Part shown: piece after piece, positions 5,413 to 64,000 of the stretch
Position numbering within the stretch: the first letter of the stretch is position 1
Layout: each line of letters starts with the position of its first letter
Assembly (NCBI GenBank): GCA_029953675.1
Contig: JAMWBK010000007.1
Location: 1,302,001 to 1,366,000 of the forward strand
Length of the DNA stretch: 64,000 nt
From: Rhodosorus marinus CCMP1338
Taxonomy: Eukaryota > Plantae > Rhodophyta
Reading direction: 5' to 3'
The notes under the pieces: generated by a model
The model's input: only the letters and a program-made list of their open reading frames with translations
Told to the model about the DNA's origin: nothing
Databases searched by the model: none
Made by a program: the position numbers and the translations under genes

Positions 5413-6540
5413 CTTTTATTCGGCAGGTACCTACCGCGGCGCGATACCACTACACTATGTTCGCTCTAAACTCACTTAGACCCCCTGTCCAGGTCTCATC
5501 TGGCTTTATTAGCATCATTCTAGCTAGTGGGAATATCCACCGGTCCGCCTGTTCCTTGTCGATTGCGTGTTGTACCAACTGTGCGTTCTGTTGCCATATA
5601 ATGCGCTTCAATTGTCCTCTCACCGACGATAAATGCCAGTCCCGATCATGGAGATGTGCCGTGGCTTTTCGACGAACTCCAGGGGTTACGTTAGTCTGGG
5701 GTTACCCTTCTTGTCCAAGTCGCCCATAGGTTTCAACCACAAATGGTACTAGAATCAGCTCTCTGCCCTCATTCGACTTTGCTTCTGCGTAATGTGCCAC
5801 TTTGCTATGTTCTGCTTTCTCCGCCGCATACCGACTCTTCCATCTAGTCTGTCGCAAGTGTTGTCGCTGCAGTGGTGACGTCACCATCACGTCCAACACG
5901 TACACGTGTCCACTTGCTGGGTGCCTCCCTACGACGTCACGACGTATCCCTGAGTACCTAAAGAACCCCTGCAGTTCCATTTGCAAGTCCGTGAAATTCC
6001 ACAGATGCAACCACCGACTCAACTCCGTTTTTAGCTCATCGTGACGCTTAGTTCGCATACATGATGATGTGCGACAATGCTGCAAACGCTGGATCCCTTT
6101 GACGTCGTGTGGTTGTTCACACACCGTACATCGGTACGATCGTGTTGGATCTGGCAGCGGTAGGACCTAGCAGCATTCGCATACTCCAGATCATCTCGTC
6201 GCGACTTAGCTTCCGCGGTCCTACGTTAGGGCAGTCCCGCAGCCATACTCCACAATGCGTACCTGCCGCAGACCGGATTCGTGCTCGGTCTATATCCTCA
6301 ATGTCGGCATTCTCCGTGAGTAGCTCGAACGCATGACAGTGGCACTGTCTAGAGAGCGTTTTTTGAATGGGACCGGCCTGTCCTCGTGTACTCCCGGGAT
6401 CGGCTTCTGTCCCTCTCGCCGAGTCCGCTAATAACTAATATTCCGCTAGCCTCTTGATGCGTTCACTCGTTCTCGGTGAGATCCTTCGCTGCACAGCTTG
6501 GCTTGCCGCCACAAGTTGAACTGGCAGATCGTCCGTGGTC
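5413..6540 (-). mobile_element. CRE-B2 3' fragment (degenerate), carrying small insertions at 5502-5515 and 5683-5704
   Basis: CEQPHDVKGIQRLQHC, KRHDELK, RRDVVG...YVLDVMVT, LVPFVVETYG. 3' UTR shared with 10186-10283 and 63446-63560. Confidence 0.85.
5683..5704 (+). repeat. Pure 22-nt insertion of the GGGGTTACGTTAGTCT repeat
   Basis: CTCCAG|GGGTTACGTTAGTCTGGGGTTA|CCCTTC. Removing it restores the B2 coding sequence LGQEG-LEFVEKA. No TSD or UTR accompanies it. Confidence 0.8.
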
Positions 6541-9500: not shown

Positions 9501-10190
9501 CTTGGTAGCACTGGTCATAGCTGCGGAGCTTACGCAGAAATGGGGACAAGGGATTTGCGGCGGCTGCTTGCTCGGCCCTGGGTTCCTTCTGCAGGTCGCC
9601 TTCCTGCTCTGTGGTGGTCCTGGCTGCCTGCGCGTCTCCTGTAGACTGTTGCTGGTGCTCATTCACCATTTCCCGGGTACACAAGGTATGTGGGCCCGGG
9701 ATCACAAGAGGCTCGGGGTACGGCCCGCGTACCTCCCTCACAATCATACGTGTAACTGCTTACAAACTTCTACACTTTTTTTTCGACAAACAAAGCCGTC
9801 CAAAAACTTCTCTGTCCACCCCGTAGCCTTTATTAACCCCAGACTAAACCCCAGGAGTGCGTGGACAGCATCTTCTTTCGCAGTGGTGGGAGAGGTGGGC
9901 GTTGGCGCCATCTCTACGTCTTCATCATCTCCTTGGTGGGCAACCCAGGCGCGCGGCACCCCGTTTTCTTCGATGTGCCCCTCCTCTCGATGTTCAGCTG
10001 GAGAGAGATGCGTCTAACCCCTAGGTGCACCTGCACTCTTCGAGTTCCCCTCTCCAGTCGGGGGGGGATCGCCACCATTTGGCATGGTTTACCCCAAACT
10101 AATCAAACTTGCAAACTTTCCGTCCGACCCTAATCTAATACTAACCAAACTTCCCCCGGACTCCAAGACTACCACCAAACTCAGACCCCG
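6541..10190 (-). mobile_element. Near full-span but decayed CRE-B element (5' region, RT with internal deletion, REL, 3' UTR)
   Basis: LAHLGRLSDSARRL (8879-9418), VRPIGVPE.LRKVA, LQLGIG, LDLENAFNRIDR, GVQQGDP (7793-8518), PPCRWEGLG, RHDEIC, PDI...YALDVT, FIPIAVETFG. Contains frameshifts and stops. Confidence 0.87.
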
Positions 10191-11446
10191 TAGCCTTTAT
10201 TCGGCAGCTACCTACCGCAGCGCAATACCACTACTATATGTTCGCTCTAAACTCACTTGGACCCTCTGTCCAGGGGGTCTCATCTAAGCTCTACTCAAGG
10301 GAAATATTGTTCTAGCCGCGCGATCTTTCTCCATCGCATGCTCAACTAGCGCAGCATTACGCTGCCACAGAATCCGATTTAATTGACCCCTCACCGATGT
10401 TAGGTGTGTTTCACGATCATGAAGATGAGCAGTGGCCTTTTGCAGAAACTCTAGTCCTGCCTGTCCCAGCCGTCCGTACGTCTCAAAAATGAATGGTACG
10501 AGTATCACCTCCCTGCGTTCAGCTCGTATTACCTCCTGGTAGTGTGCCACTTTGCTTTGCTCCCCTTTCGCCGCTGCATATCCGTTTCTCCAGCTCGTTT
10601 GTCTCAGTTGATGACGTTGAAGCGGCGACGTCACCATTACGTCCACCACGTACACATGCCCGCTCGTCGGATGCCTTGCTACAATATCTGGTCGAATACC
10701 TGACCCGGAAAAGAATCCTTGCTGCTCCACTACACAGTCATGCTCAATTCTCCTCTCACGCCGCCTACCACTGCCGCTCGTCTCCGCGGCATGGGAGGCC
10801 ACCTCTCGCACTTGTGGTTAACCACTCTACCGTCGTCATTGAGTCATCCTCGATGCTTTCCAGTTCCGTTCTGCCGCACGGATCTATCTCGGTTTGCCAC
10901 AGGCTCCGTGGCACTCTAATCGGCCGTCTTTCTGTCAGGGATGTGAGAGCCGGATTGACGCTTGTGGCTACCACTTCCTGGGTTCCTGCGGACTGTTGCG
11001 AGGTCTCCGTACGAGGCGTCACACTCGCCTCAAGTACATCCTCAGCGAATTTTTGACTCGGATAGGGCATACGGTTGAGGTTGAGTCGGAACTGCCCAGA
11101 TCCATCTCGGACTCTGCACCGCCCCGTTGTATAGCCGATCTCCTCGTCTCCGACGCTGCTGCCAGACGCTCAACATATGTGGACCTTGCGATTACCTGCC
11201 CCGTGGCCAGCGCCCACCTCACCGCAGCCGCCCGCCGCCGGGGGGCCGCGGCTTCAGCCCTTCGAAGAGTTAAGGAACGACGGTATGCTGAGAGCATGGC
11301 CAGTCTGCCTTGCGTAGCGCTTCAGGCTATGCTAGTAAAGTCCAGTCCACTTGTAGGTCCGTAAAATTCCGAAGGCGCATCCATCGGCTCAGCTCCAGTT
11401 TTAGTTCATCGTGTCGCTTTGTTCGCATACCTGACGACGTTCGGCA
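10186..11446 (-). mobile_element. CRE-B2 3' fragment split by an antisense CRE-A insertion
   Basis: The B2 text RHDELKLELSRW.RNFTDLQVE (11346-11440) continues as QQGFFSGSGIRPDI (below 10731) once 10732-11345 is removed. Confidence 0.87.
10732..11345 (+). mobile_element. 5'-truncated, internally deleted CRE-A nested in B2; 6-bp TSD TCCACT
   Basis: Matches 38560-39100 and the A 3' UTR. TCCACT at 10726-10731 and 11346-11351. Confidence 0.88.
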
Positions 11447-12284
11447 CCCCAGACTAACGTAACTGTATCCTTTATTGGGCAGCTACCTACTGCAGCGCAA
11501 CATTACTTCGAGCCCTATTTAGGGTAAAGGATCGGTGTAAGCCCGCTCCCCGGTGTCTCTAGCTACGATAAAAAGAAAAATAAGGAATCAGCGGCTGGTC
11601 CGACTGGTCCACACGAAGGGCGCCTAGTGCGAGCTCTGCGTTCCCTTTCCAAAGCGTCTATATGATTTGAGCCGTACGTTGCTCAGTTTCTCGACCTTAG
11701 TCGGCATACGACTGCATCCATCCCGAAGAAACTCTTGCGCTAGCTCTCCTGTACCTCCAAATGTCTCGATCGCCAACAGTATGAACATATGGTCCGGGTG
11801 CTCGCTTGGCATTGCCTCCTTGTAATGTTCAACTTTCCAGCGCTCCGCATGCTTCGCTGCAATTCCATTAGTATCACGGCTCCGTGCAAAGTGTCTGGTC
11901 TGTAATAGCGACACCACAGTCACGTCAATGGCGAATCGCTGCCACGTTCGTGGTGGGATGGCCACCAGGTCAGGCCTCAGATTGTCAAAGTAGTCCGTTG
12001 GTTCTTGCTTGATCTCTCGAAATTGCCACCAGTTCAACCACCTCGCAATCTTTGTGCATATCGCATCGTGTCTCCGTTGCCATAGTCCCGTCGACGTTTG
12101 GCAGTGGTCCAGTCTTTGTACTCCGTTCGTACGATGTGTACTATGGCACGTAATACACTTCTCCGTCGTCCGCAATCCCGGAATCGGGAATCCCAACAGT
12201 TGTCGGATGTTCAAATCCATTCCCAGTCCGCTCAAAAATTCGCCTAGCCGAACTCCAGAGCCAGCGCCTGCAGCAGATCGGATT
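11447..12284 (-). mobile_element. CRE-B3 3' fragment
   Basis: ORF 11624-12235 (CITC...DHC, RRHDAIC, RPDLV...FAIDVT, AIETFG). It has a distinct UTR ending GTTACGTTAGTCTGGGG. Confidence 0.87.
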
Positions 12285-13458: not shown

Positions 13459-14892
13459 GCTATCTAGGGGAAGGCTTACCCGAACCCCGCTACCGGGCTC
13501 TCATGCTACGTTCAAAAGAAAAAAGGAGGACCAGTGGATTCTCCAACTGGTCCACGCGCAAAGCGCCTAGGGCTATCTCGGCATTACCTCGGCAAAGTTG
13601 CCTGTTGATTTGCGATCTTATATCGCTCAGCTCCTCGCTCCTGTGCAGTAGGTGCTTGCAGCTGTCCCGCAGAAACTCCTGTGCCATCTGTCCCGTCCGC
13701 CCAAATGTTTCTATTGCAATTGGGATGAACTTGTCATCCGGGTGTTCTATCGTCATCGCCTCTTTGTAGTGTGCTTTCTTCCAGCTCTCCGCACATCTTG
13801 CTGCATATCCATTCTCCCCCTCACTACGCCTCAGATACTTCCCTTGCAGAGGAGACACAACCGTCACGTCCAGCGCATATCGTTGAAATGTCCTCGGATG
13901 CGTAGCAATGATGTCTGGCCGTAGGCCGTAGTTTTCAAAGTACTTCTCTGGCTCCTGCTCGATGTCCAGAAAGTTCCACCTGTTCAGCCACCTTGCGATC
14001 TCCGTGCATATCTCGTCATACCTACGTTGCCACAGGCCAGTCGACGTGGGGCAATGATGAAAGCGTTGTACTCCGTTTGCACCGTGTTTACCAAGGCATC
14101 GAGTACACTTTTCCGTAGTCCGCAGCCCCGGAATCGGTAGCCCCAGTAGTTGTCGGATATTCACCTGCACTTCGGTCGAGCTCAGCTTTTTCGGCTCCAA
14201 CGTCGGCAGTTCTCGCAACCAGACTCCCGATCCAGAGCCCTCCGCGGACCTGATTCGAGCGTGATGTTCGGCGGAGATGCGCGAATTGTTAACCAGGCGT
14301 CGGAATGCGGAATGGTGTGCCTCCCGAGCGAGAGTTTGTTGTGTAGAACCATTAACCCCAGACTAACGTAACCGGAAACTTTACTGGGCAGCTGCCTACT
14401 GCAGCGTATCACTAGTGCTACTACTATCTAGGGAAAAGTTTACGCTAACCCCGCGACCGGGGTCTCACGCGACTTTCGAAAGAAAAAACTGGGACCAGTG
14501 GATTCGCCAACTGGTCCACTCGCAGAGCGCCTATCGCTATTCCGCGTTCCCCTGCCATACCCTTTCTGGTTGATCTGCGATCTTACATCGCTCAGTTCTA
14601 GGCTCCGGTGCAGTAGGTGCTTGCAGCTGTCCCGCAGAAACTCCTGTGCCATCTGTCCCGTCCGCCCAAATGTTTCTATTGCAATTGGGATGAACTTGTC
14701 ATCCGGGTGTTCTATCGTCATCGCCTCTTCGTAGTGCGCTTTCCTCCACCTCTCAGCACATCTTAATGCATATCCATTCTCCCTCTCACTACGCCTCAGA
14801 TACTTCCCTTGTAGAGGAGACACAACAGTCACGTCCAGCGCATACCGTTGATATGTCCTCAGATGCGTAGCAATGATGTCAGGCCGTAGCCC
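13459..14892 (-). mobile_element. Two tandem CRE-B 3' fragments (13459-14353 lacking its tail; 14354-14892 with tail)
   Basis: ORFs 13490-14218 and 14440-14832 carry REL motifs. Tail AACCCCAGACTAACGTAACC at 14354. Confidence 0.9.
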
Positions 14893-15605: not shown

Positions 15606-15616
15606 AGTATAGGCGC

Positions 15617-32170: not shown

Positions 32171-32233
32171 ACCTGCGGAAGGATCATTCACAAAAAGAGT
32201 TGAAGAGCCTGGGAGGGTTTTCTTCGACACATC
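32171..32233 (+). pseudogene. Retro-captured 18S rRNA 3' end plus probable ITS1 start
   Basis: ACCTGCGGAAGGATCATT (32171-32188) matches the conserved eukaryotic 18S 3' terminus exactly over 18 nt. It is followed by 45 nt not found in CRE-A. Confidence 0.82.
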
Positions 32234-32462: not shown

Positions 32463-34602
32463 AGCTAATCACCCATACGATCGAGCTCGAGCGAGCCAGT
32501 AGGTCTGATTGGGGCGTTTTGGTGGTTGACTTCCGCAACGCGTTCATCAACATCGTCTCGCGGACGCATGCTTTGGAGGTGATTCGCAGGGTTTTCCCGG
32601 AGGCGTGGCCGTTCCTATCCGGTATTTACGCACGGGGGAGCCTCCCTTACTTGACAACGCAGGGCTGTGTTTTTGCAGCACGTACTGGCGTTCAACAGGG
32701 TGATCCTTGTGGGACGGTACTTCACGCGTGTGCCTTGCAGTTCGTGCTCCCGCGTCTGGCGGCTGAGGTGCCGGAGCTTCGCATCTGTGCCTACCATGAC
32801 GACGTGACGCTGCTGGGCACTCCTGAGCACATGGCTCGGGGATTGACCCAGATAGAAGCACTCGTACGTGAAGTTGGTCTAACGGTGGAACCCGAAAAAC
32901 GTCGTTTTCTCGGCCCGCGTGAAGTTTGGAGGAGCTCCCTGCCACCTAGTCTTCGAGCCCTTGGTGAATATGCGGGGCTCGAGCACCATGGCGTCGGTTT
33001 TGGGAGTTGCAACTTTGTCCAAGACTCTTGCGAACGATTTTTAGCACGCCATAAGCAGCTCACCGACGCCATAAGGAGCTAACCGACGCCATTGAGCGCC
33101 TACCGGACAGGATGATCCAATCGGCTTGCCTGCTCTCCCGTTTTTGTGCCGGCGCCCGACTGAATTACTGGCTGCGAAGCCTTCCACCTCACTGGGGCTC
33201 GTGGATGGCAGCCAAGGCGGACGAGGCGACGCTGAAGCACTGGGGAACGCTCCTGGATGAACCCCTAGATTTGGAAGCGGCTCCTGACAGGGACCTAATT
33301 CGTGGCCAGATTGCCCTACCTTCACGATTAGGCGGATTTGGAGTGGCCGACTGGGGACTCGTATGCTCGGCAGCAGCGGTCGCCTCCTGGGCTACCGCGC
33401 TTCGCACCTTGGTGAGTTTTCGGATGCGAAGTGCTTGCCTTTTGGCTAGAGCATTGACTAGCGCAGACACCGTGACCCTTCCGCCACCGCTTTTGAGTAT
33501 CTATGATGCTCTCCAGCAGGCGTTCAGTAAGTGTAACACCGTGCCGGACGAGAGCCGATCTAGATTTCGCTCCTGGAAGGAGCTGTTATGGGGACGAACT
33601 GAGGTGCTCGAGGACTCTCCCATCGACAGAGTACTCGCCGGCGAGGGGGAAGTTAGCCCCGGGTCACCGGTTGCCGATTACCCGGGTCTGAGCCTATTGT
33701 GGAGCTCGCGCACTGATGTGATTCAACATAGCCTCACCTGGGGCCAACACAGTGCCGCTCACGCAATCTTGCTCAACTCTCCACTCACACCGCCTACCAC
33801 CGCCGCTCGCCTCCGCGGTATGGCAGGCCATCTATCACATTTGTGGTTAACGACCCTGCCGTCATCACTGGGTCACCGCCTGGATGCCTTCCAGTTTCGC
33901 TGTGCCGCACAGATTTACCTGGGTTTGCCACAAGCTCCGTGGCACCCTAATCGGCCGTCTTTCTGTCAGGGATGTGAGAGTCGGATCGATGCTTGTGGAT
34001 ACCATTTCTTAGGTTTATGCGGACTGTTGAGAGGTCTTCGTACGAGGCGTCACACTCGCTTCAAGTACATTCTCAGCGAATGTCTGACTCGGGTAGGGCA
34101 TACGGTTGAGGTGGAATCGGAATAACCCAGATCGGTCTCGGATAGGGCACCGCCCCGCTGTATCGCAGATCTCCTCGTCTCCGATGCTGCCGCCAGACGC
34201 TCAGCATATGTTGACCTCGCGATTACATGCCCTGTGGCAAGCGCCCATCTCACGGCTGCCGCCCGCCGCCGAGGAACAGCTGCTTCGGCCCTTTCCCGCG
34301 TGAAGTAACGACGGTATGCGGAGGGTATGGGCAGCCTGCCTCGCGCTGAGGGTCGCTCCCACCGGTTCCAGCCTTTCATTGTGGAGAGCTTTGGTCACGT
34401 GGAGAAGATGGGTTTGGAGTGGTTGCGAAAATGTTTAACTGAACATCCTGTTTTTGCGGCGTCTAAGTGTCTCTATGTGGCGATATTCGAGCAGCATGCT
34501 TGCCGAGGCGCGCCATCGGCGCCTGGGTTTGCACGCTTCCCTATCTAGTTCTTAGTTCTTTTTGACGGTTTGCGTAGCTTTTTAAGCTATGCTAATAAAG
34601 CC

Positions 34603-37600
34603 GTCGAGGATTGGGGTATTGTTTCTTTTTCGGTCGCGAGCGTGTTCGTTTACGGGAAGCGCTTCCTCTGGTACGCCTTCCCCTCGATTTTCCGCGGGGC
34701 ATCGTTTGCATTTGCAACTACTTCTGTCTTCCGGTCTGTCTTCCGGGTGGGTGTGTTGCGGGGCCCTTCCTATTTGGGTTGGGTTTGGTCGATTATTCTC
34801 TCGGTGTGGTATCATATTGGTGGTGCAACGTTTCCTTTGGGGATTCCCTCAGGATGGTAGGGATATCTCCGCGCTCGACGGAGCCTCCTCCCAAGGAGGC
34901 ACTGCCAGGTGGGGGACTCCGTGTTCGCCTCAGCTGCGGCACCTTTTCTTCCGAGGTTGACTTGGAAGGCGCTTCTGGCACCCAGGCGCGTGCACTTATC
35001 TCCGCTGTCACCAGCCTGATCACGGCTGCGAGTGAACGTGGAGTGCTCCCTCAGCTCACCCAGAAGCTAGGTGAGCTGGAATCGGGATTGCTGGCCAGGT
35101 CAAATTCAAATTCGGACGAGAATTTGAATTGCACCAGAGTGGCAGCGTTGGCCGAAGGCAGTCAACATCAGGTCAATCAACATGAACCTGTCCCGGGACA
35201 GGCGAGGGCGGTTGCTTCTGCGCGGGACAGTACGACGTTGGGGAGCGGCAGGCCGGGCCAAAACGCGCTTCAGCGCTCGGGGACTCGAGGCAATGGTGGT
35301 GGTGACTGTGCGGCAACCGGTGTGGAGGAGACTGCAGCTGTGGACTTCCCTCTCTTGGACCAGCCCTCAGGTGGTCACCAGCTCCCGGCTACTTCGGGGG
35401 CACATGGTGGCCGCAAGGGGGGCGCTTCGTACGCATCAGTCTTGCGGAAGGGCACCACTGCCACACGTACGTCGGCTATGCTCCGTTTCATACCATCTCG
35501 CGAGCCTCAGGATGGACCTGTGGAGACCACTCTCCAATTTCTGTGGGTGCGAAATGTCCGGCCCCAGACTACACGAGGACAGGTTCCGTCTATGCGAGAC
35601 TTCCGGGACACTTTTGCGGAATCGTTAGGGTGCAGCCGGGGTGATTTCTTCTTCGCAAACTATGAGGGCCGCGATGTGCTGTTTTTGGTCTCCGCAACCG
35701 CCGCCAAGTACCTGGAGGCCTTGCTGGCGAAGCCTACCGAGCAGTGGCCTGAGAGCGCCCGGTGGCTGCGCTGCAACCCGCAGGTGGTTTTGCACTTCGA
35801 TTTTGACCGTTTCTCGGGCAATTTCCTGTCTCCGGGAGAAACGGCAGGGCTCTCTGAGCATGAGAGCAGCGTGAAGGCGGCAGCGATCCATTGGCTACGG
35901 ATTCAGCGCCTTGAGAGGATCTTGTTGGAGCGGTTCCGGTCGGGCCCTCGTCACCTGCGCATGGCGGTTTCCAGTTTCTTCGATCTGGAGAGGCGACTTG
36001 TGCTGACTTCGCGCTACAAGACAGAGCTGCAGCGGGTGGGGATTTTGGAGGGCTCTGCTTCCAGCACTACTTCCAGCGAGAGTGGTGAGGCAGGGGAGCA
36101 GACTGAGGGCATGGCGGTGCAGGACGCCCAGGTTACTTTGCTGAAGCCCGCGGGATCCGTTCCGCGAGCCTCGCGGAGTGGGCGGCTCACGACTTTGGTG
36201 CGGATAGGAGGTAAGAGAGCGAGGACCGACTCCCCCGGGTCTAAGGGGAGAAGCACGATTAGCGCTCCAGGCACGGCTGCGAGGTCGCAGCCTATGGATC
36301 TACAGTCTTATGTCCTGAAGGAGGGCGGAGACTGGGGCATTTGGCGTACGCGTTTTCGGAGTTGGCTCCGGCGGTGGATTTCTTTGGAAGGAGGCTCGCT
36401 TCCCCTCCGTGGGGGCATTCCCCCAGTCGTCCTTCCTCGTGGAGACCTTCTAGTTGCTGGAACGATTCTCGATTTCATCTTCACGAGCCTGGCTCGCAAC
36501 ATTCGGGACACAGTCATTTGGGTTTTTCTGGGGGTCATGCCGCGCCTGATTCTGGCCCCCATTCACACATCGGAGCGCAGATGGCGAGTACGAGACCGAC
36601 TGGCCCTGTTCTTGAAGGGAGACTTCGAAGTACTACAGCGCAGCTATTTGGCGTCGTCAGCACCATCCGCCCGTCGGACTCGGCATGGCACAGTGTCGCC
36701 CGTGCCAGCTCGAGTACAGAAATTGGTAGCAGTGGGCGATTTAAGTCGAGCGGCGCGGGTTTTGGAGGGCCAGGCGCCTGTCCTCCCCTACGATGATAGT
36801 CTCGCCCAGACGGTGTCGTCTTTGTTCCCTGAGTCCGACGTGGATTTGTCCCCTGAATTCGAGGTATTCTTGGACCGTCCGGAGTTGGCCAGGTTTCGCA
36901 TCGATCTGACGCTCAGTAAGTCTGACCTGGAGGATTTGCTTCGTACCTCGCGTCGGGGACGCTGTCCCGGACCCTCCGGACTAAGAACAGAGCTATTGCA
37001 GGCCCTGAGCCAGCCTGGCAAGAGCGCGCTTCTGAGGATCCTTAACAAGTTGTTCCAGGGCGTATCGGGTGCGTCCGCGCCATGGGAACATCTCCGGCAG
37101 GCACAGCTTTGCTTGCTCACGAAACCTGACCACCAGCCGGACCACCCGCGTCTCCGGCCGATCGGGATGGTGGAGAGCCTACGGAAGTTAGCCGGGAGGT
37201 GGCTATGCCAGCGCCTTCGCCAGCGCGTCACAGCTTTTATGGCGCCCTTGCAAGTAGGGGTGGGATTCTCTGGGGGTTGTGAACTGATCACCCATGGGAT
37301 CGAGCTAGAACGCGCCAGTAGGCCGGAGTGGGGAGTCTTGGTGGTTGATTTCCGGAACGCATTCAACAGCGTGTCGCGGACGCATGCGCTAGAGGTGCTC
37401 CGACGTGTGTTTCCGGAGGCGTGGCCGTTTCTATCGGGTATTTACGGAGGGGAGAGCCTCCCCTACTTGACACCGGAGGGCACTGTTTTTCAAGCACATA
37501 CTGGCGTCCAACAAGGCGACCCTTGCGGACCTCTTCTTCATGCCTGTGCCCTACAGCTCGTACTTTTACGTCTTTCGACTGAGGTCTCGGATCTTCGAAT

Positions 37601-39426
37601 CTGCGCGTACCACGATGACGTAACATTGCTGGGCACCCCTGACACCCTGGCTAGGGGACTGACCGCGATCGAAGCGATTGCACGTCGCGTCGGTTTGACT
37701 GTGGAAACAGAAAAATGTCGCTTTCTCCCCCCGAGGGACGTGTCGCTGAACTCTCTGCCACCCACTCTGCGACTAATCAGCGAACGTGAAGGGTTCGAAC
37801 ACCACGGCGTCGGATTGGGGACTGACAACTTTGTCCAAGCATCCTGCGAGCGAGTTTTGGCACGGCACAAGCAACTCACCGACGCCATTGAGCACCTACC
37901 CGACAGCATGCTGCAATCGGCCTGCTTGCTTTCCCGCTTTTGTGCCGGTCCCAGACTCAACTACTGGTTGCGCAGCCTGCCTCCAGCTTGGGGCTCGTGG
38001 ATCGCGGCTAAAGCCGACGAAATGACCCTGCAACACTGGGGAACGCTCTTGGATGAGCCCCTCGATCTTGAAGCTGCTCCCGACAGGGACTTTATTCGTG
38101 CACAGATCGCTCTACCGTTGCGATTAGGGGGATTCGGCGTCGCAGACCGTGGGCTGGTATGCTCGCCAGCGGCGGTTGCCACCTGGGCTACCGCGCTGCG
38201 AACGTTGGTGACCTTCCAGATGCGAAGTGCCTGCCTCTTGGCTCGAGCTTTGACCAACGAGGATCCAGTGACCCTGCCGCCCCCGCTTTTGACAATTTAT
38301 GTTGGTCTTCAACACGCGTTCAGGAGGTGCAACGCCGTGCCGGACGCAAATCGGTACCGCTTTCGTTCCTGGAGGGAGCTGTTATGGGGACGAGCTGAAG
38401 CGATTGAGGATTGTCCCCTCGACCGAGTTCTTGCCGATGACGGAGAGGCTAGCCCCGGGTCCCCTGTTGCAGACTACCCGGGTTTGAGCCGATTGTGGAG
38501 CTCCCGCACTGATGTGATTCAACATAGCCTCACCTGGGGCCAACACAGTGCCGCTCACACAGTCATGCTCAATTCTCCTCTCACGCCGCCTACCACTGCC
38601 GCTCGTCTCCGCGGCATGGGAGGCCACCTCTCGCACTTGTGGTTAACCACTCTACCGTCGTCATTGAGTCATCGTCTCGATGCTTTCCAGTTCCGTTCTG
38701 CCGCACGGATCTATCTCGGTTTGCCACAGGCTCCGTGGCACTCTAATCGGCCGTCTTTCTGTCAGGGATGTGAGAGCCGGATTGACGCTTGTGGCTACCA
38801 CTTCCTGGGTTCCTGCGGACTGTTGCGAGGTCTCCGTACGAGGCGTCACACTCGCCTCAAGTACATCCTCAGCGAATTTTTGACTCGAATAGGGCATACG
38901 GTTGAGGTTGAGTCGGAACTGCCCAGATCCATCTCGGACTCTGCACCGCCCCGTTGTATAGCCGATCTCCTCGTCTCTGACGCTGCTGCCAGACGCTCAA
39001 CATATGTGGACCTTGCGATTACCTGCCCCGTGGCCAGCGCCCACCTCACCGCAGCCGCCCGCCGCCGGGGGGCCGCGGCTTCAGCCCTTCGAAGAGTTAA
39101 TGAACGACGGTATGCTGAGAGCATGGCCAGTCTGCCTTGCGCTGAGGGTCGCTCTCACCGGTTCCAGCCATTCATTGTGGAAAGCTTTGGTCACGTCGAT
39201 AAGTCGGGTTTAGAGTGGTTGCGGAAATGTTTTGCTGAGCATCCTACTGAATATTTGGCGCTCTTGAGGCGTTTAAGTGTCTCCCTTTGGCGATATTCCA
39301 GCGACATGCTGTCCGAGGCGCGCCATCGGCGCCTGGGGTTGCATACTTCCCTCCCTAGTTATTAGTTCATCTTCACGCCTTGCGTAGCGCTTCAGGCTAT
39401 GCTAGTAAAGTCCAGTAAAGTCCAGT
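34603..39426 (+). mobile_element. Full-length, apparently intact CRE-A non-LTR retrotransposon
   Basis: 5' region of ~250 nt, one uninterrupted ORF, short 3' UTR and reiterated TAAAGTCCAG tail. Confidence 0.95.
34854..39365 (+). CDS. CRE-clade polyprotein (~1503 aa): N-terminal region, reverse transcriptase, CCHC finger, restriction-like endonuclease
   Basis: First in-frame ATG is 34854. Motifs: RLRPIGMVESLRKL, QVGVG, VVDFRNAFNSVSR, GVQQGDP, AYHDD, LPLRLGGFG, CQGC...HFLGSC, RTRRH, ADLLV...YVD, FQPFIVESFG. Confidence 0.95.
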   Translation: MVGISPRSTEPPPKEALPGGGLRVRLSCGTFSSEVDLEGASGTQARALISAVTSLITAASERGVLPQLTQKLGELESGLLARSNSNSDENLNCTRVAALAEGSQHQVNQHEPVPGQARAVASARDSTTLGSGRPGQNALQRSGTRGNGGGDCAATGVEETAAVDFPLLDQPSGGHQLPATSGAHGGRKGGASYASVLRKGTTATRTSAMLRFIPSREPQDGPVETTLQFLWVRNVRPQTTRGQVPSMRDFRDTFAESLGCSRGDFFFANYEGRDVLFLVSATAAKYLEALLAKPTEQWPESARWLRCNPQVVLHFDFDRFSGNFLSPGETAGLSEHESSVKAAAIHWLRIQRLERILLERFRSGPRHLRMAVSSFFDLERRLVLTSRYKTELQRVGILEGSASSTTSSESGEAGEQTEGMAVQDAQVTLLKPAGSVPRASRSGRLTTLVRIGGKRARTDSPGSKGRSTISAPGTAARSQPMDLQSYVLKEGGDWGIWRTRFRSWLRRWISLEGGSLPLRGGIPPVVLPRGDLLVAGTILDFIFTSLARNIRDTVIWVFLGVMPRLILAPIHTSERRWRVRDRLALFLKGDFEVLQRSYLASSAPSARRTRHGTVSPVPARVQKLVAVGDLSRAARVLEGQAPVLPYDDSLAQTVSSLFPESDVDLSPEFEVFLDRPELARFRIDLTLSKSDLEDLLRTSRRGRCPGPSGLRTELLQALSQPGKSALLRILNKLFQGVSGASAPWEHLRQAQLCLLTKPDHQPDHPRLRPIGMVESLRKLAGRWLCQRLRQRVTAFMAPLQVGVGFSGGCELITHGIELERASRPEWGVLVVDFRNAFNSVSRTHALEVLRRVFPEAWPFLSGIYGGESLPYLTPEGTVFQAHTGVQQGDPCGPLLHACALQLVLLRLSTEVSDLRICAYHDDVTLLGTPDTLARGLTAIEAIARRVGLTVETEKCRFLPPRDVSLNSLPPTLRLISEREGFEHHGVGLGTDNFVQASCERVLARHKQLTDAIEHLPDSMLQSACLLSRFCAGPRLNYWLRSLPPAWGSWIAAKADEMTLQHWGTLLDEPLDLEAAPDRDFIRAQIALPLRLGGFGVADRGLVCSPAAVATWATALRTLVTFQMRSACLLARALTNEDPVTLPPPLLTIYVGLQHAFRRCNAVPDANRYRFRSWRELLWGRAEAIEDCPLDRVLADDGEASPGSPVADYPGLSRLWSSRTDVIQHSLTWGQHSAAHTVMLNSPLTPPTTAARLRGMGGHLSHLWLTTLPSSLSHRLDAFQFRSAARIYLGLPQAPWHSNRPSFCQGCESRIDACGYHFLGSCGLLRGLRTRRHTRLKYILSEFLTRIGHTVEVESELPRSISDSAPPRCIADLLVSDAAARRSTYVDLAITCPVASAHLTAAARRRGAAASALRRVNERRYAESMASLPCAEGRSHRFQPFIVESFGHVDKSGLEWLRKCFAEHPTEYLALLRRLSVSLWRYSSDMLSEARHRRLGLHTSLPSY

Positions 39427-39519
39427 CTAGGGACACATTTATAAATTCGCGTGTCTGCCGGTTTTGGACTTTTTGAGGAATTGAAAATGAGTGAATGAGT
39501 TTATTTTCATAATTGTTTT

Positions 39520-39835
39520 TATTGAATGAATGATTTTTGTTTTTTATTGAACGAATTTTTGGTTGATCCGAGGATGAAAGAAAACCGGAGGGGAAAAAAA
39601 AGACGAAGCGCGGCAAAGATGGGGGCCCCTCCGACATCGAACCAGCGTTCATACGCCACAGTAAGAAACTTGCACAGATAAGCAACGACGACAGATGGTC
39701 AGGGCGGTTCACGGAACAATTCCCGAAGCCAACGAGAACCAACTGAATCCATAAACGCAAAGCACTCAAGCACCAGAGGTACCAGACGACGAGCTAGAGC
39801 CGATCCCTGGGGAAGACAAAGCCGGCGCATATTTC
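39520..39835 (-). mobile_element. Divergent CRE-C' 3' fragment, head-to-head with the next element
   Basis: Similar to but diverged from 2321-2610 (ICASFLLWRMNAGSMSEG...). Confidence 0.82.
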
Positions 39836-42800
39836 ACTATGCGTGTTCTCTCGTGGTTTTCGCACCTTGTCGCCTCCTACCCGGACGGTTCCCTTCCCCT
39901 TTGTCGTCAGAGCACGGCCGTACGGCTCCCTCGTCGACTTCATAAGCCCCTAGGATTGGTGTTGGATTTTCTCTGGCAGCAGGTCGCCGCGAACCCTCAC
40001 TGCTCTCTTCGCTGGGAACTCTTGTTCTTTTTTCCCCGCCTCGTGCTCACCTCCTCTACCGTCCCCCTCAACCCACATCCTCGCCGGGTCCACCCTCGCC
40101 GAAAACTGCAAATGTTCCTTTCCGGCGACTTTGAGGACCTCGAACGTTTTTATTTCGCTTCTCTCTCTTCCTTTTCTCCTAGTGCTCCCTCAGCTTTTAG
40201 GTCTTCTCGACAGAATCGGGCGCGTCACGCGGTGGCAGGCGGTGATCTGCGGCGGGCAGCCGGGATCCTCCAGCAGCGGCAACCTGTGGTTCCATACTCT
40301 GATGATCTTTATTCACCGCTCCGTTTGCTCTTTCCCTCGGAAGGCTCCCCTTGGGACTCCTCGTTTGAATCAGTGTTGGAAGAGTACCGCGCCGCGCCAC
40401 ATCCCAGTGCGCGGTTAGTGGTCAATCTGGAGGCGGTGCGTGAGTTGGTTCATGATGCTCCGAAGGGCCGTTCCCCAGGGCCCTCGGGGCTGCGGGTGGA
40501 ATATCTCCGTTTCTTAAGTGATGAAGGTTTGAAGGCGTTGGCGTGGGTGGTCGAAGCGCTTGTGAATGGTGATCCCCTGTGTGAGTGTGCGTGGTTCTTG
40601 GTCGGGCGTTCTCAGTTGTGTCTGCTTTCGAAGCCCGGCCACACGGCCTCGAGCCCTGCTATTCGCCCTATTGGCCTGGTTGAGGTGGTCCGCAAATTGG
40701 CGGCGCGATGGTTAGTGAAAATCCTGGTTCCCGAATCCCGCCGTTTCTTTGGGCACGTGCAGTTAGGCGTGGGCTATCGTGGTGGCTGTGAGTTGTTGTC
40801 TGTTTTACTCCGTTCGGAAATGGCGTACTCCCCAGATTCTGGGCTCCTCTCTGTAGATTTTACCAATGCGTTCAACCGCGTCTCTCGTCCGGCTCTCATG
40901 CACGTGGTGCGCGAAGTCTTCCCTGTAGGCTTTCCCTTTGTTAGTAGACTTTATTCTCCGCTTGGTCGTGGGGCTACCTATGACACCCTTGGCGCTTCCT
41001 CACACACGTTTGCGGCGCGCACAGGGGTACAACAGGGTGATCCCTTGTCCCCTTTCCTACATGCCTGTGGACTACAACTCGTCTTGCTTTGTCTTCGCTC
41101 CGAATTCCCGCAGGTTCGTACGGTTGCATACCACGACGACGTGTGCCTCCTGGGGCCCCCTGATACTCTAGCACTCGCTTATGATCGTCTCCGCTCCTTG
41201 GCTTCGCGGGTTGACCTGGAGGTTAATCATCACAAATCGTTCTACTGGGGAGGTGTAGCTGCACAAGAGCAGCAGGTACCTGCGTCGTTCCAGGATATTT
41301 GGAGACCGGATGGTTTTGTCCACTTAGGCATCCCCTACGGGTCGCCGTCCTTCGTTGAAGGCGAGTTGCTGCAGCTCCTCGGTAAGCACAGACAGCTGGT
41401 TGCAGAGCTTCGACGGCTACCTCCGGGCTTTCTCCAGTGCTCGTTGTTGCTGTTTCGGTATTGTTGCAGTCAGCGGTTAACCTATTGGCTTCGCTCACTT
41501 CCAACTCATTGGGGCCGGTGGTTGGCCACTCGTGCGGATGCTGAAAGTTTCCGTGACCTGGGGTATTTTCTCGATGAAGAGCTGAGCGCTCTGCCGCGAC
41601 CCACCTGTGATGTTGTGCGCGCCCAGGTAGGCCTCCCATTGCGATTGGGGGGACTGGGCCTCTGCAATCGTGTTGTGGTCCAACCTGCAGCCGCAGTAGG
41701 GGCCTGGGGAACCGCACTTCCCACTTTGAGCAGCTTGGGTATCTCGAAGTTCCGCAATTTGATGGCGAGCCTCTCGCGGGGTGTCTTGCTTCCCAGCGTA
41801 CCGGAAAGCGCCCAAGACTTGTTTCTGGAGCTCCAAACCGCCCTGAATTCCTGTACTAGTCTCCCCGAAACCGTTCAACCCCGTCTTCCTGACTGGCGAG
41901 CTGTATTTGACCGCTCTCGAGGCTCCGCCCCGGGGATTCGTCCTGCGCCTGAACCTGTTCTAGGGAGATTGACCCAGTGGTTGCCGCAGAAGAAGAAGTT
42001 CCAGTTGATCCTCCTGATGATTCCCAGCGCGCTGGGAGCCGAGCTCAAGCACGCACGGATGCGCTGCAAAATATCCTTTCTTGGGACTTGCACCGTGCTG
42101 CATATGGCCGACTCCTCGCGCAGATGGTCTCATCTTCTCGCGCTCGCGCCCGCCTACGTAGTCTTGGAGGGGTTATTAGCTCTCAGTGGCTCATGACCGT
42201 ACCAGCCTTTCCGCCACTCACACTGTCGGATTTCGAAGTGCGTACTTCACTGCGCTTATACCTCGGCTTACATCAGCCCCCTTGGCCGTACGAGATGGGT
42301 TCGTCGTGCCCTCTCTGCTCTCAGACTGAAGACAACGCAGATTTTGGCGCCCACCTGCTCGCTAGTTGCCCGGCGGTGAAAGGTGCTCGAACCCGCCGCC
42401 ACACACGGATCTTGAACCTGTTATACCGGGAACTTCGGCCTATAGTCCGGCAAGCCGGTCTGGAAATCGAACGTGAGAAACCTTTACCCGTCACGGACTT
42501 TCAAAATGATGAACGCCGTGTAGCCGACCTGGTGATCACCTGTGACGACAGCCGCCGTACCACATACGTTGATCTTGCTGTTCCTAACCCTCAAGCTAGT
42601 CGTTATCTCCCGGCTGCGGGGGAGCGCCGTGGATCTGCCGCCGCCAGCATGAGACGCCGCAAAGAGATCAAATACGCGGGGGCTTTGTCTTCCCCTGGTG
42701 TTCGTGCTTCGGCACTAGCACATCGCTTGGTACCCCTGATCATTGAGTGCTTTGGGTTCATGGACTCTGTTGGTTCTCGCTGGCTTCGGGAGTTGTTCCG

Positions 42801-42960
42801 CGAACGCCCTGACCGTCTTCAATCGTTGTTTACCCGCTTAAGTTTCCTGCTGTGGCGCATGAATGCCGCTTTGATGTTGGAGGCGCGAGTACTTCGCCGC
42901 GCTTAGTCTTTTTTTCCCCTCGGGGTTTTTTTTTCAGCCTCCGATTAAACCATTCGTTCG
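39836..42960 (+). mobile_element. 5'-truncated CRE-C with RT and REL; one frameshift near 41960
   Basis: ORF 39839-42196 (AIRPIGLVEVVRKL, SVDFTNAFN, GVQQGDP, AYHDD, LPLRLGGLG) and ORF 41977-42906 (CCHC, REL). Tail CCATTCGTTCG. Confidence 0.93.
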
Positions 42961-43137
42961 AGATAGCGATAGAAGTAGTGTTACGCTGCAGTAGGCAGCT
43001 ATCCAGTTTGGGGTTACGTTAGTCTGGGGTTTACTAGCATAGCCTGAAGCGCTACGCAAGGCGTGAAAAGGAACTAAGAACTATGGAGGGAAGCGTGCAA
43101 ACCCAGGCGCAGACGTTAGTCTGCGGTGGGGTAAAAG
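42961..43137. mobile_element. CRE-B 3' UTR and tail (+), short CRE-A 3' end (-), and more 16-nt repeat
   Basis: GTTACGCTGCAGTAGGCAGC...GGGGTTACGTTAGTCTGGGGT to 43030; reverse CRE-A end 43031-43110; GTTAGTCTGCGG and GTTAGTCTGGGG after it. Confidence 0.82.
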
Positions 43138-43709
43138 TTTATGGTTAGTCTGGGGTAACAAGGACAAATATACGGTGTGGTTTTATTAAGGAAAGCTTTA
43201 TGGTCGAGAAGACGCTGGGACAGTAATCGAATACCAAACAAAGACTCCATCTGCTTAGAGGCCCATTTCGATGAGATACGGAAAGATTCTTGATTTGGCT
43301 ATTTCTGTCGAGAAATCCAAAGAATAGGATATCTAGGGGTATTCATTTGTAAAATTTAAGGGATCCTTTTTTAGATTAGGATGCACGGATCGTCGCAAGT
43401 ACAGGGAAATACTGTGGGCTATGGTCCCGCTTGGAGGGCATGTGGGACAGCTCGGAGCTCGAAAAATCGCTTGGTTCACGTCCCAATGGCTCACGTAGTA
43501 CATGTGCTATTTCCTGGTGGTTTTGCTAGCAGAGCCCTCGGTTGATACGGGCAAGCAGATAGAAGAGGCTTGTAAAACTTGCCGGGACAAGGTTTGATTC
43601 GAATGATCGAGCATTCTGTATCGTGAGAGGAAATGATCTGCAGAATCTGCCTCCCAACGGGCAATTATTTCCCGAGTTACGCTTTCTTTGAAGCGTCCAG
43701 ACCTCTCAA

Positions 43710-43823
43710 CCCTCTTGATTTCGGAAAAAAGATCCCAATGCAACCCCGGACTAAGGTCGCCCCAGACTTACGTAGAATGTCCGCGACGAAACGCCCTGCA
43801 TCTCTGTTCCGAAATCAAGAGGG
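43710..43823. repeat. 17-bp perfect inverted repeat enclosing two degenerate 16-nt repeat units
   Basis: CCCTCTTGATTTCGGAA (43710-43726) and TTCCGAAATCAAGAGGG (43807-43823). AACCCCGGACTAAGG...CCCCAGACTTACGT at 43742-43773. Confidence 0.75.
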
Positions 43824-44850: not shown

Positions 44851-45130
44851 TACTAGCATAGCCTGAAGCCCTACGCAGGGCGTTAAAAGGTACTAAGAAC
44901 TAGGGAGGGAAGCGTGCAAGCCCTGGCTTCACTAGCATAGCCTGAAGCGCTAGGCAAGCGTGAAACGAAAACTAGCAACCAGGGAGCGAAGCGTGCAAGA
45001 CTCTACCAGCATAGACTGAAGCGCTACGAAAACAATGAAGTGGAACTAAGAACTGCGGAGAAGAGCCCCAAAACACTGGCGGCAATGGCGCGCCTCGGCG
45101 AGCATATTGCCAGGAAAGCCAGAATATAGA
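44851..45130 (-). mobile_element. Three stacked short CRE-A 3' ends
   Basis: ACTAGCATAGCCTGAAGC-type ends at ~44852, ~44931 and ~45005. Confidence 0.8.
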
Positions 45131-57490: not shown

Positions 57491-57630
57491 AACCCGCTAA
57501 GGTTTTATTAGACGCTTAGATCGGTACTATATCCACGCCTGACGGGCTCCACTAGGGAGTCCTTTAGTAAAGTGTTCACGGTTACGTCAGTCTGGGGTTC
57601 GTTAGTCTGGGGTTACGTTAATCTGGGGTT
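57491..57630 (+). mobile_element. 85-bp 'D' 3' module plus three tandem 16-nt repeat units
   Basis: 57491-57575 is ~95% identical to 58421-58505. It is followed by GGTTACGTCAGTCTGG GGTTCGTTAGTCTGG GGTTACGTTAATCTGG GGTT. Confidence 0.8.
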
Positions 57631-57723
57631 GGGGGGAAAAAAGCCGTTGGAGGTTGAGTTTGGGGTTGATAGTCTGGAGTGGTTTGAAAGTTGGATAGTT
57701 TTTGCGAAAGCGTTTTGACGAGT

Positions 57724-58386
57724 ATGACTACTTTACCGCCTGTGCCTCCGGATGGAGGGGGCTCCTCGACAGACGCTACTATGACAGACCTTCCGGCTGT
57801 TGGCCGAGCGGTATCTGCACCTGAGCCCTTCCCAGTCCCTGTTGCTGAGACTGCACCTGCATATGAACCTGGTATCAACGTGGCTACATCGTTGGCAATT
57901 GATCTGAGCTGCGGAGCGCTGCAGTTACACCTGGACCCCCCCAAGGCCAAAGCTCAGACCTACAACGCGCTGACGCTCCGATTCATGGAGCTTCTCGTAC
58001 AAGCTCATGAGAAAGGCGCCGAGGAGGTCTTCTTACAGCAGTTGACACCGCCGCAACGCCCTGCCCCTGCACCACGAGCAACCCGACCTCGAGCAACCCG
58101 ACCACTACCTGTCTACGAAACACCGCCGTACGCCATTGCCGCCGCTCGCCCCCGCTCTCCTCAAGCCCCAGATCTCGGAGGAGATCAACCTGATCTCGAA
58201 CGAGATAACTTCCCGGATCTCGGCACGGCCAATGACAGCCGCCGCACGACTCCCCGTCCCCGTACTCGACCAATGAATTGTCGACACGTGTCCATGTGCA
58301 CCAAACACCGGCCACTGCCAAGCGCTCGTTTTTCTCAAGATCTGGTGAACATGAAGAAAAGGAGGGCGGGAGATGAGGCTGGTTGA
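57724..58386 (+). pseudogene. Probable 5' (N-terminal) fragment of a further CRE-like family
   Basis: ATG 57724 lies just after a tail array. LAIDLSCGALQLHLD...YNALTLRFMELLVQAHEKG resembles the CRE-A N-terminus LRVRLSCGTFSSEVD...ARALISAVTSLITAASERG. The similarity is weak. Confidence 0.5.
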
Positions 58387-58391
58387 AAATT

Positions 58392-58597
58392 TTAGTCTGG
58401 AGTTATGTTAGTCTGGGGTAAACCCGCTAAGGGTTTATTAGACACTTAGATCGGTACTATATCCACGCCTCACGGGCTCCACTAGGGAGTCCTCTAGTAA
58501 AGTGTCCAGGCTTATCTCCCTAGATATTAGTAGCACTAGTGATACGCTGCAGTGGGCAGCAGCCCAGTAAAGTTGACGGTTACGTTCGCCTGGGGTT
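58392..58597 (+). repeat. Stack of repeat units, a second D module and a CRE-B 3' tip with tail
   Basis: TTAGTCTGGAGTTATGTTAGTCTGGGG; D module 58421-58505; GCTGCAGTGGGCAGC...GTTACGTTCGCCTGGGGTT. Confidence 0.8.
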
Positions 58598-61631: not shown

Positions 61632-62147
61632 CGACCTGAGGAGGAAAAATCAAAGGTATGCGCTGGATGTGACTGTGGTGTCACCATTACAGGGAAAATA
61701 TTTGCGGCGGAGCCAAGATGATAGCGGATACGCGGCGAGAGCTGCGGAGAAGTGGAAAATCGCTCACTACACGGAAGCGATGGTGATCGAGAAACCGGAT
61801 GACAAGTTCATCCCGATAGCGATAGAGACGTTTGGGCGTACGGGGCGAATGGCACAAGAGTTCCTCCGCGACAGCTGCAAACACTTACTGCACAGGAGTG
61901 AGGAGCTGAGAGATGTGAGATCGCAGATGAACCGGCAACTATGGTGAGGTAATGCAGAGATAGCACTAGGCGCTTTGCGCGTGGACCAGTTGGAGAATCC
62001 GCTGGTGCCTGTTTTTTCTTTTGAACGTAGCATGAGACCCCGGTAGCGGGGTTCCAGTAAGTTTCTCCCTAGATAGGATTAGACGTAGTGTTGCGCTGCA
62101 GTAGGCAGCTGCCCAGTAAAGCTTATGGTTACGTTAGTCTGGGGTTA
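61632..62147 (+). mobile_element. CRE-B 3' fragment with UTR and 16-nt tail
   Basis: QRYALDVT...FIPIAIETFG; ends GGTTACGTTAGTCTGGGGTTA. Confidence 0.9.
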
Positions 62148-63260: not shown

Positions 63261-64000
63261 CTTACCCAGACTAACGTAACCGTAAACTTTCCCCCAGCTG
63301 TAACCGTAAACTTTACTGGGCAGCTGCCTACTGCAGCGTATCACTATTTCTACTACTATCTAGGGATCTGCGATCCCACATCGCTCAGCTCCTCGCTCCT
63401 GTGCAGTAGGTGTTTGCAGCTGTCCCGGAGAAAGTCCTGTGCCATAACCCCAGACTAACTTAACCCCGTAGCCTTTATTCGGCAGCTACCTACCGCAGCG
63501 CAATACCACTACTATATGTTCGTTCTAAACTCACATACACCCCCTGTCCAGGGGTCTCATCTAAGTTCTACTCGAGGGAAATATCGTCCTATCCGCGCTA
63601 TCTTTCTCGATCGCATGCTCAACTGGCGCAGCATTTTGCTGCCACAGAATCCGATTTAATTGACCCCTCACCGACGACAGATGGGAGTCACGATCATGCA
63701 GATGCGTTGTCCCTATGCGAAGAAATTCAAGGCTTGCCTCGCCCATTCGACCAAAAGTCTCGAAAATGAACGGCACAAAAACGAGGTCTCGGTTTTCCAC
63801 CCTCGGCACTTCCTTAGAATGCAACGCCTTCGCTTGTTCTGCTTGTCTCGCAGCATGCCCGCAACTCCAGCTCGTATGTCTCAACTGATGCCTTTGAAGT
63901 GGCGATGTTACCATCACGTCCACCACGTACACGCAACCGCCCGTCGGGTGCCGTGCTACAATATCGGGTCGAATTCCGGACCCAGCAAAGAACCCCTGAG
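63261..64000 (-). mobile_element. CRE-B 3' pieces with tails (63261-63445) and a CRE-B2 3' fragment (63446-64000)
   Basis: CCCAGACTAACGTAACC at 63265; TAACCCCAGACTAACTTAACCCC at 63446; ORF 63561-63932 carries REL motifs. Confidence 0.88.

Follow-up and report, generated by a model that had tools for sequence, protein, structure and literature searches.

The genome of the red alga Rhodosorus marinus CCMP1338 contains a G-rich 16-mer, GGGGTTACGTTAGTCT, which recurs at the 3' ends of R2-like long interspersed nuclear elements (LINEs) in a 64-kb stretch of assembly GCA_029953675.1, contig JAMWBK010000007.1 (~1,302,001-1,366,000 of 2,212,799 bp; hereafter the window, to which all coordinates refer unless otherwise stated). 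In our analysis these elements have the unit as their terminal module: its ends are redundant, its copy number is variable and the elements form chains at it. The sequence suggests, with a probability that we put at about 0.6, that the 16-mer is the tail of the D, C and H2/B-type elements and at the same time a self-renewing landing pad for them. A preliminary description of this DNA had proposed that the unit may be both tail and target of several retrotransposon families, and this remains a fair description, given that the chaining is above chance and that two insertions lie within units.

All 16-mer sites were compared on the G-rich strand. In the window the 16-mer has 10 matches on the two strands with at most two mismatches, against 0.01 expected from shuffles, while its 14-mer core, GGTTACGTTAGTCT, has 17 matches with at most three mismatches against 3.0 expected, a count reached in 0 of 100 shuffles. 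In Smith-Waterman alignments against six units, 16 segments outscore the shuffle maximum. The unit had been listed at about 20 sites, and those at 5682, 6539, 9834, 11446, 12285, 12362, 14355, 43010, 43111-43159, 43741, 57580, 58390, 58578, 62127, 63262 and 63445 are real; the listed site at 7122 holds the partial AGTCTGGGGTTGA only and no full unit, and a 16-mer-like match at 18067 is at chance level. The recurrence of the unit is therefore real, although most sites are not arrays. Tandem Repeats Finder (TRF) identifies 57580-57630 (period 16, 3.2 copies, 88% matches) as the sole tandem array of the unit in the window, and the other sites hold 1 to 2 units, almost all of them 1.3 units of the form GGTTACGTTAGTCTGGGGT(T/A)A.

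Eleven 3' ends have a common layout: one or more hairpins, an A(G/A)TAAAG box and, some 5 nt past the box, GGTTACGTTAGTCTGGGGT(T/A)A. In these the unit stops at GGGGT, GGGGTT, GGGGTTA or GGGGTAA, and the sequence that follows is unrelated from site to site. The module can be written A(G/A)TAAAG-N5-GGTTACGTTAGTCTGGGGTWA, and its tail of 1.3 units is terminally redundant, the final 5-7 nt repeating the first ones (GGUUA...GGUUA in RNA letters); tails range from 1.3 to 3.2 units. The box is invariant in the A, C, D and H2 families and lies 0-5 nt before the tail (for example, in the element 3' ends at 39404-39426, 14376-14384 and 63468-63480). It resembles a polyadenylation-type signal or a recognition box for reverse transcriptase (RT). 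The D-type 3' untranslated region (UTR) reads CCCCGG...CGGGG, then GCTGCAGTAGGCAGC, then CCCAGTAAAG; the C-type reads GCTGCGGTAGGTAGC, then CCGAATAAAGGCTAC, with the variant tail GGGGTTAAGTTAGTCTGGGGTTA; the H2-type reads CTCCACTAGGGAG, then TCCTTTAGTAAAGTGTTCAC; and the H3-type is represented by one copy only. These 3' UTRs had been described as otherwise different. There are indeed several types, although all have the A(G/A)TAAAG box and most have hairpins in common. With RNAalifold the CCCCGG/CGGGG and GCUGC/GCAGC hairpins are kept in all eight aligned copies, the latter with a G-U wobble in three of them, and the CCCAG just before the box is predicted to pair with the CUGGG of the tail. 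The structure is plausible but unproven because true covariation is scant. As in elements of the stringent type, a predicted stem-loop lies directly upstream of a short tandem tail of variable copy number.

The tail appears to be carried by the elements themselves, because its start and end phase are fixed, its variants are family-specific and a bare copy of it is found as an orphan in a coding region. Tails specific to a lineage include GGGGTTAAGTTAGTCT in the C family and the GGGGTAA ending of some copies, together with (AGTAAAGTCC)n in family A and (TTCR)2 in B2; the A and B2 tails are also short and terminally redundant, and differ from the 16-mer. B2 had been counted among the families that end in the 16-mer, which we do not find. 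Five B2 copies end in ...GATTAAACCATTCRTTCR and diverge beyond it: four have their 3' ends in the window, at 42960, 12514, 2320 and 4630, and the fifth ends at 12692 of locus L003, which is a second transposon island of this genome. The true B2 terminus reads CCATTCRTTCR, and the 16-mer that comes after the B2 copy at 42960 is part of a 70-nt D-type 3' UTR piece. The site listed at 5683 is not the end of a 3' UTR but the orphan, a bare tail of 22-24 nt (5682-5705, + strand) that interrupts the endonuclease-coding part of a C-family copy. Both paralogues of this host copy lack it, and no target-site duplication of at least 3 bp was found around it. In a Joint Genome Institute (JGI) sequence (sample 3300017118, L001 positions 1-80), which is apparently a transcript and possibly derives from a culture of the Marine Microbial Eukaryote Transcriptome Sequencing Project, an H2-like 3' UTR ending ...CTCCACTAGGGAGTCCTTTAGTAAAGCGTTCA is followed by GGGTACACGGGTGCAACCCC and not by the 16-mer. 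Either this copy has lost the 16-mer, or the tail of the module may be a different one in a diverged strain of Rhodosorus; both are possibilities.

The layout of these 3' ends also bears on a different explanation, that the unit belongs passively to a module for polyadenylation or termination, composed of A(G/A)UAAAG and a G/U-rich downstream element, and is retained for ending the transcript, with no role in priming or targeting. The box does not vary between families and is 5 nt upstream of the unit, which is itself G/U-rich, as this explanation would have it. However, sequence past the cleavage point would not be copied, yet every copy and the orphan has the unit; poly(A) does not follow the unit; and the chaining of elements is left unexplained. 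We consider this explanation improbable.

The coding regions place these elements among the R2-like LINEs. A full-length family A element (34601..39426, + strand) has a 1584-aa open reading frame (ORF; 34611-39365) with an RT and a C-terminal restriction-like (REL) endonuclease. It ends in (AGTAAAGTCC)2.3 rather than in the 16-mer, its 5' end adjoins the tail of the preceding A copy, and the nearest relatives of its ORF are R. marinus transcripts with 87-88% identity. The B2 element at 39804..42960 (+), also with RT and REL, is 38% identical to A and has its true 3' end at ...CCATTCGTTCGA. It has 99% identity to a copy on another R. marinus contig, and its C-terminal part has 99% identity to the annotated R. 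marinus protein NDN08_000224. Both match the Pfam model RVT_1 (E 4.9e-15 for A and 5.9e-11 for B2), and a HMMER search found 8427 relatives. Other nearest relatives are unnamed proteins of Pyropia and Closterium, and in the PDB it is R2 proteins that match best, followed by LINE-1 ORF2p. Downstream of the RT, the A ORF has CQGC-X9-H-X4-C-X9-RHT...E...IAD-X13-D, which contains a C-X2-C-X9-H-X4-C motif, and B2 has the close variant CPLC...H...C...RHT...ADLVI...VDLA. Both agree with the REL endonuclease consensus quoted for MoTeR, SLACS and CRE (PMC12857005), and this region of A and B2 has no match to a Pfam model. The elements thus have the RT type, the C-terminal CCHC and PD-(D/E)xK motifs and the signatures of target-primed reverse transcription of R2-like REL non-long-terminal-repeat retrotransposons. 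Many copies are 5' truncated, and target-site duplications of 9 bp (CTAATCACC, an A copy) and 11 bp (TACACAACTGG, a B2 fragment) were identified; the A copy with the 9-bp duplication is at ~32186-32468, inserted in the RT region of another A. Searches with tblastn and tblastx revealed further diverged families with the 16-mer tail, at 23-40% identity to A. Among these 16-mer families, the one full-length D-type copy, X1 (6539..9818, - strand, ~3.3 kb), is frameshifted. It retains remnants of RT and REL coding sequence, its tail at 6539-6557 is degenerate, and its N-terminal coding part contains, at 9131-9200, a tandem duplication of 33 bp that is perfect and has 2.1 copies. D-type copies diverge by 8-25% pairwise, so the lineages are old. 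Families A and B2, with copies at 99% identity, are young. In the searchable literature we found no paper joining Rhodosorus and retrotransposons, and the transposons of non-cyanidiophyte red algae have barely been described.

The arrangement of the copies is what suggests that the tail is also a target. It had been noted that three B-type 5' ends lie directly downstream of another element's tail, and this is borne out and extended: all eight recognisable full-length 5' ends in the window begin directly after a tail on the same strand. These are the D-type ends at 9818 (-), 43160 (+) and 63261 (-), the B-type leaders at 10184 (-), 43740 (-) and 57631 (+), and the two of family A, at 29510 and 34601. 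The same is true of at least six copies that are 5' truncated, among them the D copies 14354->13447 (after 14355), 12283->11446 (after 12285) and that at 58598 (after 58597), the H2 fragments at 58422 and 12361 and the D fragment at 63444; directly after an A tail, at 48700, there is a further D copy. Since tails occupy well under 2% of positions, the counts argue that 5' ends do not lie at tails by chance. The 16-mer families stack mostly on 16-mer tails and A stacks on A tails, and the stacks contain very short pieces of 15, 29, 65, 79, 90 and 180 nt.

On the minus strand, the 5' end of X1 comes after stacked tail pieces: short units, TGGGGTTTAGTCTGGGGTTA, are followed by a C-type end of 15-17 nt, (A)ATAAAGGCTACGGGG(T), at 9819..9853, directly upstream. 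At 10158..10201 a C-family 3' end is cut at ...AATAAAGGCTACGGGGT, and a B-type 5' leader with degenerate unit-like sequence follows directly. The tail of the D copy 12283->11446 is at 11446..11464, and this truncated copy itself lies directly after the stacked tails of an H3-type end (12362-12382) and an H2-type fragment (12285-12361). The canonical tail at 14355..14373 belongs to the D copy 14870->14355 and is directly followed by the 5'-truncated D copy 14354->13447. Two degenerate units, CTACGTAAGTCTGGGGCGACCTTAGTCCGGGGTTG, at 43741..43775 lie directly upstream of the third B-type leader. The D-type copy X2 has its full 5' end at 63261, next to a variant tail with a stacked 29-nt tail fragment, AAAGTTTACGGTTACGTTAGTCTGGGTAA (63262..63305), and the C-family tail GGGGTTAAGTTAGTCTGGGGTTA at 63445..63467, preceded by GCTGCGGTAGGTAGC...AATAAAGGCTAC, is directly followed by a 5'-truncated D fragment. 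On the plus strand, a 5'-truncated H2 3' UTR fragment (58422-58507) adjoins the degenerate units at 58390..58421, and next to it lies a 90-nt D-type 3' UTR fragment (58508..58597) with the tail GGTTACGTTCGCCTGGGGTT at its end; the D-type copy that starts at 58598, truncated at about position 1060 of the full-length element, adjoins that tail. The D-type copy 61641-62147 ends in a canonical tail of 1.3 units (62127..62147) with non-repeat sequence in its flank.

Stacking is also seen in the families with other tails. Family A 3' ends of ~79-100 nt are stacked tail to head at 44847-45105 (-) and 15571-15972 (+), the former being seen by TRF as a 79-bp repeat. Two family A 3' portions are inverted head-to-head at 47143-48686 (47322-47879 against 48520-47977, at 84%), much like a palindrome. 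A diverged B2-like 3' end (39427-39803, -) lies tail-to-tail with the tail of the full-length A element, and because of it the B2 copy at 39804-42960 seems to have an inverted repeat of 245 bp.

Chains of this kind might be produced by template switching alone, in which case the RT, within a single integration and once it arrives at a break or the 5' end of one RNA, jumps to the 3' tail of another RNA to which it binds specifically, and the tails mark joints and not targets. R2-type RTs jump end to end between templates, and the best PDB matches here are R2 proteins. The pieces of 15, 29, 65-90 and 180 nt in the chains are in keeping with this, as is the stacking of A on A tails and of 16-mer families mostly on 16-mer tails, which would be expected of cognate 3' ends. 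On the other hand, about half of the downstream partners are 5' truncated and would require jumps from internal positions. The B2 fragment beside a B2 tail has its own 11-bp duplication and so represents a separate integration at that spot, and an antisense A fragment within a unit, described below, is not explained by a sense-to-sense jump. We therefore think it possible, though rather unlikely, that template switching is the only source of the chains.

Two insertions split units, and both do so in the same phase, GGGGTT^ACG. The first splits a tail of at least two units. The first part of this tail (43010..43031, +) ends a 70-nt D-type 3' UTR piece (42961-43031) placed after the true 3' end of B2; an antisense, 5'-truncated family A 3' end of 79-84 nt (43032..43110, -) lies between GGGGTT and ACGTTAGTCT of the tail; and the unit resumes at 43111, where its remainder, AGACGTTAGTCTGCGGT, and a stacked mini-fragment, GGGGTAAAAGTTTATGGTTAGTCTGGGGTAAC (43111..43159, +), precede the 5' end of the D-type copy X3 at 43160. 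The second is the B-type segment at 57631..58389 (+), which consists of a G/T-rich 5' leader and a 231-aa ORF (57691-58386). The array of 3.2 units at 57580..57630 (+; GGTTACGTCAGTCT GGGGTT-CGTTAGTCT GGGGTTACGTTAATCT GGGGTT), which itself comes after an H2-type 3' UTR (...CTCCACTAGGGAGTCCTTTAGTAAAGTGTTCAC), lies directly before the leader, and two degenerate units, TTTTAGTCTGGAGTTATGTTAGTCTGGGGTAA (58390..58421, +), begin 4 nt past the stop codon of the ORF. Only at these two places, 43010-43127 and 57580-58421, are there units on both flanks. The sequence near the B-type 5' ends had been thought to look like degenerate repeat. The leaders do contain one or two unit-like stretches each, for example GGGGTTGATAGTCTGGAG, but they are not simply decayed arrays: we rejected the possibility that they are mere degenerate 16-mer arrays since they are homologous to each other and a comparable G/T-rich leader lies ahead of one A copy.

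The B2 elements also land in D-type sequence. Upstream of the B2 at 13458 stands ...CCCTAGATAGCGA, which is D-type 3' UTR sequence, and ATAGCGATAGAAG... of the same region follows the B2 at 42960; in all, two B2 copies and one B2 fragment are at the same place in D-type 3' UTRs. The three landings (12426-12513, 13447-13470 and 42950-42975) are around TAGATAGCGA^TA. This pattern suggests that the B2 endonuclease may be sequence-specific. The fragment, of 65 nt, lies 11 bp beyond a B2 tail and has its own duplication, TACACAACTGG. Insertions are also found elsewhere, in the coding regions and 3' UTRs of other elements.

We propose the following as a way in which the 16-mer may serve as both tail and landing pad. 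The element RNA would end in one or more hairpins, A(G/A)UAAAG, about 5 nt and GGUUACGUUAGUCUGGGGU(U/A)A, a structure that we infer, and reverse transcription would begin in the tail. The terminal GGUUA redundancy would allow the nascent cDNA to re-align, occasionally giving 2-3 units, and abortive events could leave bare tail orphans. The endonuclease and priming step would favour existing tails, and nicked tail DNA could pair with the tail of the incoming RNA, so that each insertion would regenerate the landing site. RT template jumps from one RNA to the 3' tail of another would produce similar chains and probably contribute.

Several points weigh against this proposal. That the RNA carries the tail is a prediction from the DNA. 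The exact 14-mer is kept in six copies whose bodies are 10-25% apart, which could mean that it is copied from an external source, either a target or a host repeat. The chains can be explained by template jumps with no target preference. The old copies have frameshifted ORFs, so that junctions may have been reshaped by deletions. The second island of the genome, L003, has A and B2 copies and no canonical tail, and our sample is therefore one locus.

Another possibility is that telomerase makes the 16-mer as the telomere repeat of R. marinus, that the elements are telomere-specific LINEs and that the copies in the window are interstitial relics. The unit is G-rich with a TTAG/GGGGTTA core, the 14-mer is perfectly conserved across diverged elements and the unit is common to diverged 3' ends, and the two insertions split units in one phase. 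Moreover, red-algal telomere motifs are largely unknown or unusual, and standard telomere probes failed in three red-algal classes (PMC3622300, PMC7046594). The location and form of the repeat nevertheless make this very unlikely. Both ends of the contig are over 840 kb away, so that the window is not subtelomeric, and its mid-contig position indicates that the elements are not confined to chromosome ends. The unit never exceeds 3.2 copies, is imperfect, occurs in both orientations and has a non-repeat downstream flank at ~14 of 17 sites. Tail variants track element lineage, the sister families A and B2 have other tails, and the L003 island has A and B2 and no canonical tail; we found no interstitial arrays of one sequence that are independent of the neighbouring element. 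The unit, searched in seven rotations, is absent from the searchable full-text literature, and an exact scan of JGI metagenome contigs gave 0 matches for a 1.5-unit pattern and 0 for a 17-nt pattern. The genome paper (PMC10250338) reports 13 large contigs and scores one telomere or more on 12 of these, and its available text and supplements neither state the motif nor remark on an odd repeat; the searchable literature likewise states no telomere motif for Rhodosorus. Canonical telomere motifs were not found in the window or the fetched loci, where the only tandem of at least three copies of a 5-12-mer is a trivial (TTTTG)x3 in L003. The suggestion that a guild of retrotransposons simply targets a telomere repeat is thus at odds with the mid-chromosome position of the elements, with the lack of long homogeneous arrays and with flanks that are mostly non-repeat.

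The island also contains sequence that is not part of these elements. A 5.3-kb satellite at 20052-25323 has a 227-bp unit in 23.8 copies and a higher-order period of 443 bp. Given this satellite and the stacked LINEs, the island is a candidate centromere. An annotated R. marinus gene of 321 aa (45180-46145, -; contig 1,347,180-1,348,145), alone in the island, encodes a signal peptide and C-terminal GGxGxD-like repeats resembling calcium-binding RTX repeats, with no Pfam match. An intact 1307-aa ORF (52666-56589, +) has a signal peptide, GGxGG glycine-rich repeats and a C-terminal part rich in Ser, Thr and Pro; neither a Pfam match nor an exact annotated product on record exists for it, and a word-indexed search, for which the ORF is possibly too low in complexity, found no homologue. 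A search of the window with Rfam gave nothing at the gathering threshold or at E<=1, including no ribozyme, telomerase RNA or snRNA, and the window is without tRNAs.

If the 16-mer is a landing pad, site-preferring R2-like elements would here use a sequence that they deposit themselves, instead of a host gene or a microsatellite, and this would explain how a compact genome of 31 Mb confines its LINEs to few islands. Such LINE islands may be centromeres, as with the Zepp clusters of green algae. Were the unit a telomere repeat after all, it would be the longest known in algae, carried and targeted by a guild of REL LINEs, for which the island in mid-chromosome would be either a relic or a second place of residence.

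The elements share with the R2 superfamily (R2, R4/Dong, NeSL, CRE/SLACS/CZAR) a single large ORF in which the RT is followed by CCHC and PD-(D/E)xK motifs, as well as the absence of poly(A), 5' truncation and short target-site duplications, and their best PDB matches are R2. They differ in having no single host-gene target, since their insertions are in the bodies, 3' UTRs and tails of other elements. The insertion only in spliced-leader genes or telomere arrays that is the hallmark of the CRE clade is not seen in the window. L2/UnaL2 and CR1 elements have a stem-loop and a short tandem tail at the 3' end, with an apurinic-type (APE) endonuclease and units of 5-8 nt. The likeness to these lies in a hairpin just before the tail, in a copy number that varies by slippage and in a 3' end common to distinct lineages, while the endonuclease here is of the REL type and the unit is 16 nt. 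LINEs of telomere repeats include TRAS and SART of Bombyx and MoTeR, FoTeR and Cnl1 of fungi (PMC12857005, PMC7367193). MoTeR, FoTeR and Cnl1 also have a REL endonuclease and repeat-like sequence at some 5' ends, as in the B-type leaders, and the two insertions at a fixed phase in a G-rich repeat are reminiscent of telomere-repeat LINEs in general. However, those elements lie within the telomere arrays at the host's chromosome ends and are flanked by repeats on either side, whereas ours are mid-chromosome, in both orientations and with mostly non-repeat 3' flanks, and the TRAS/SART pattern of repeats on both flanks at one phase and orientation is not found here. Clusters of Zepp and Zepp-like LINEs mark the centromeres of the green algae Chlorella, Coccomyxa and Chlamydomonas (PMC11005252). 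Here too LINEs are nested and stacked in discrete islands of a compact algal genome, although Zepp is L1-type and poly(A)-tailed and the centromere role of the island in the window is putative. According to the surveys of Kojima and Fujiwara, Dong reportedly inserts in (TAA)n, and Waldo, Mino, Kibi and Koshi in microsatellites. These LINEs, in which the tail equals a repeat target, are closest in behaviour to the elements described here: in both, one short repeat is present at the element 3' end and at the insertion site, and the number of units is variable. They differ in that the R. marinus unit is 16 nt long, is mostly present in 1.3 copies and corresponds to no host microsatellite, seemingly being the elements' own. 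LINE behaviour in which tail and target are the same is thus already known, and what appears to differ here is a 16-nt unit that the elements themselves supply.

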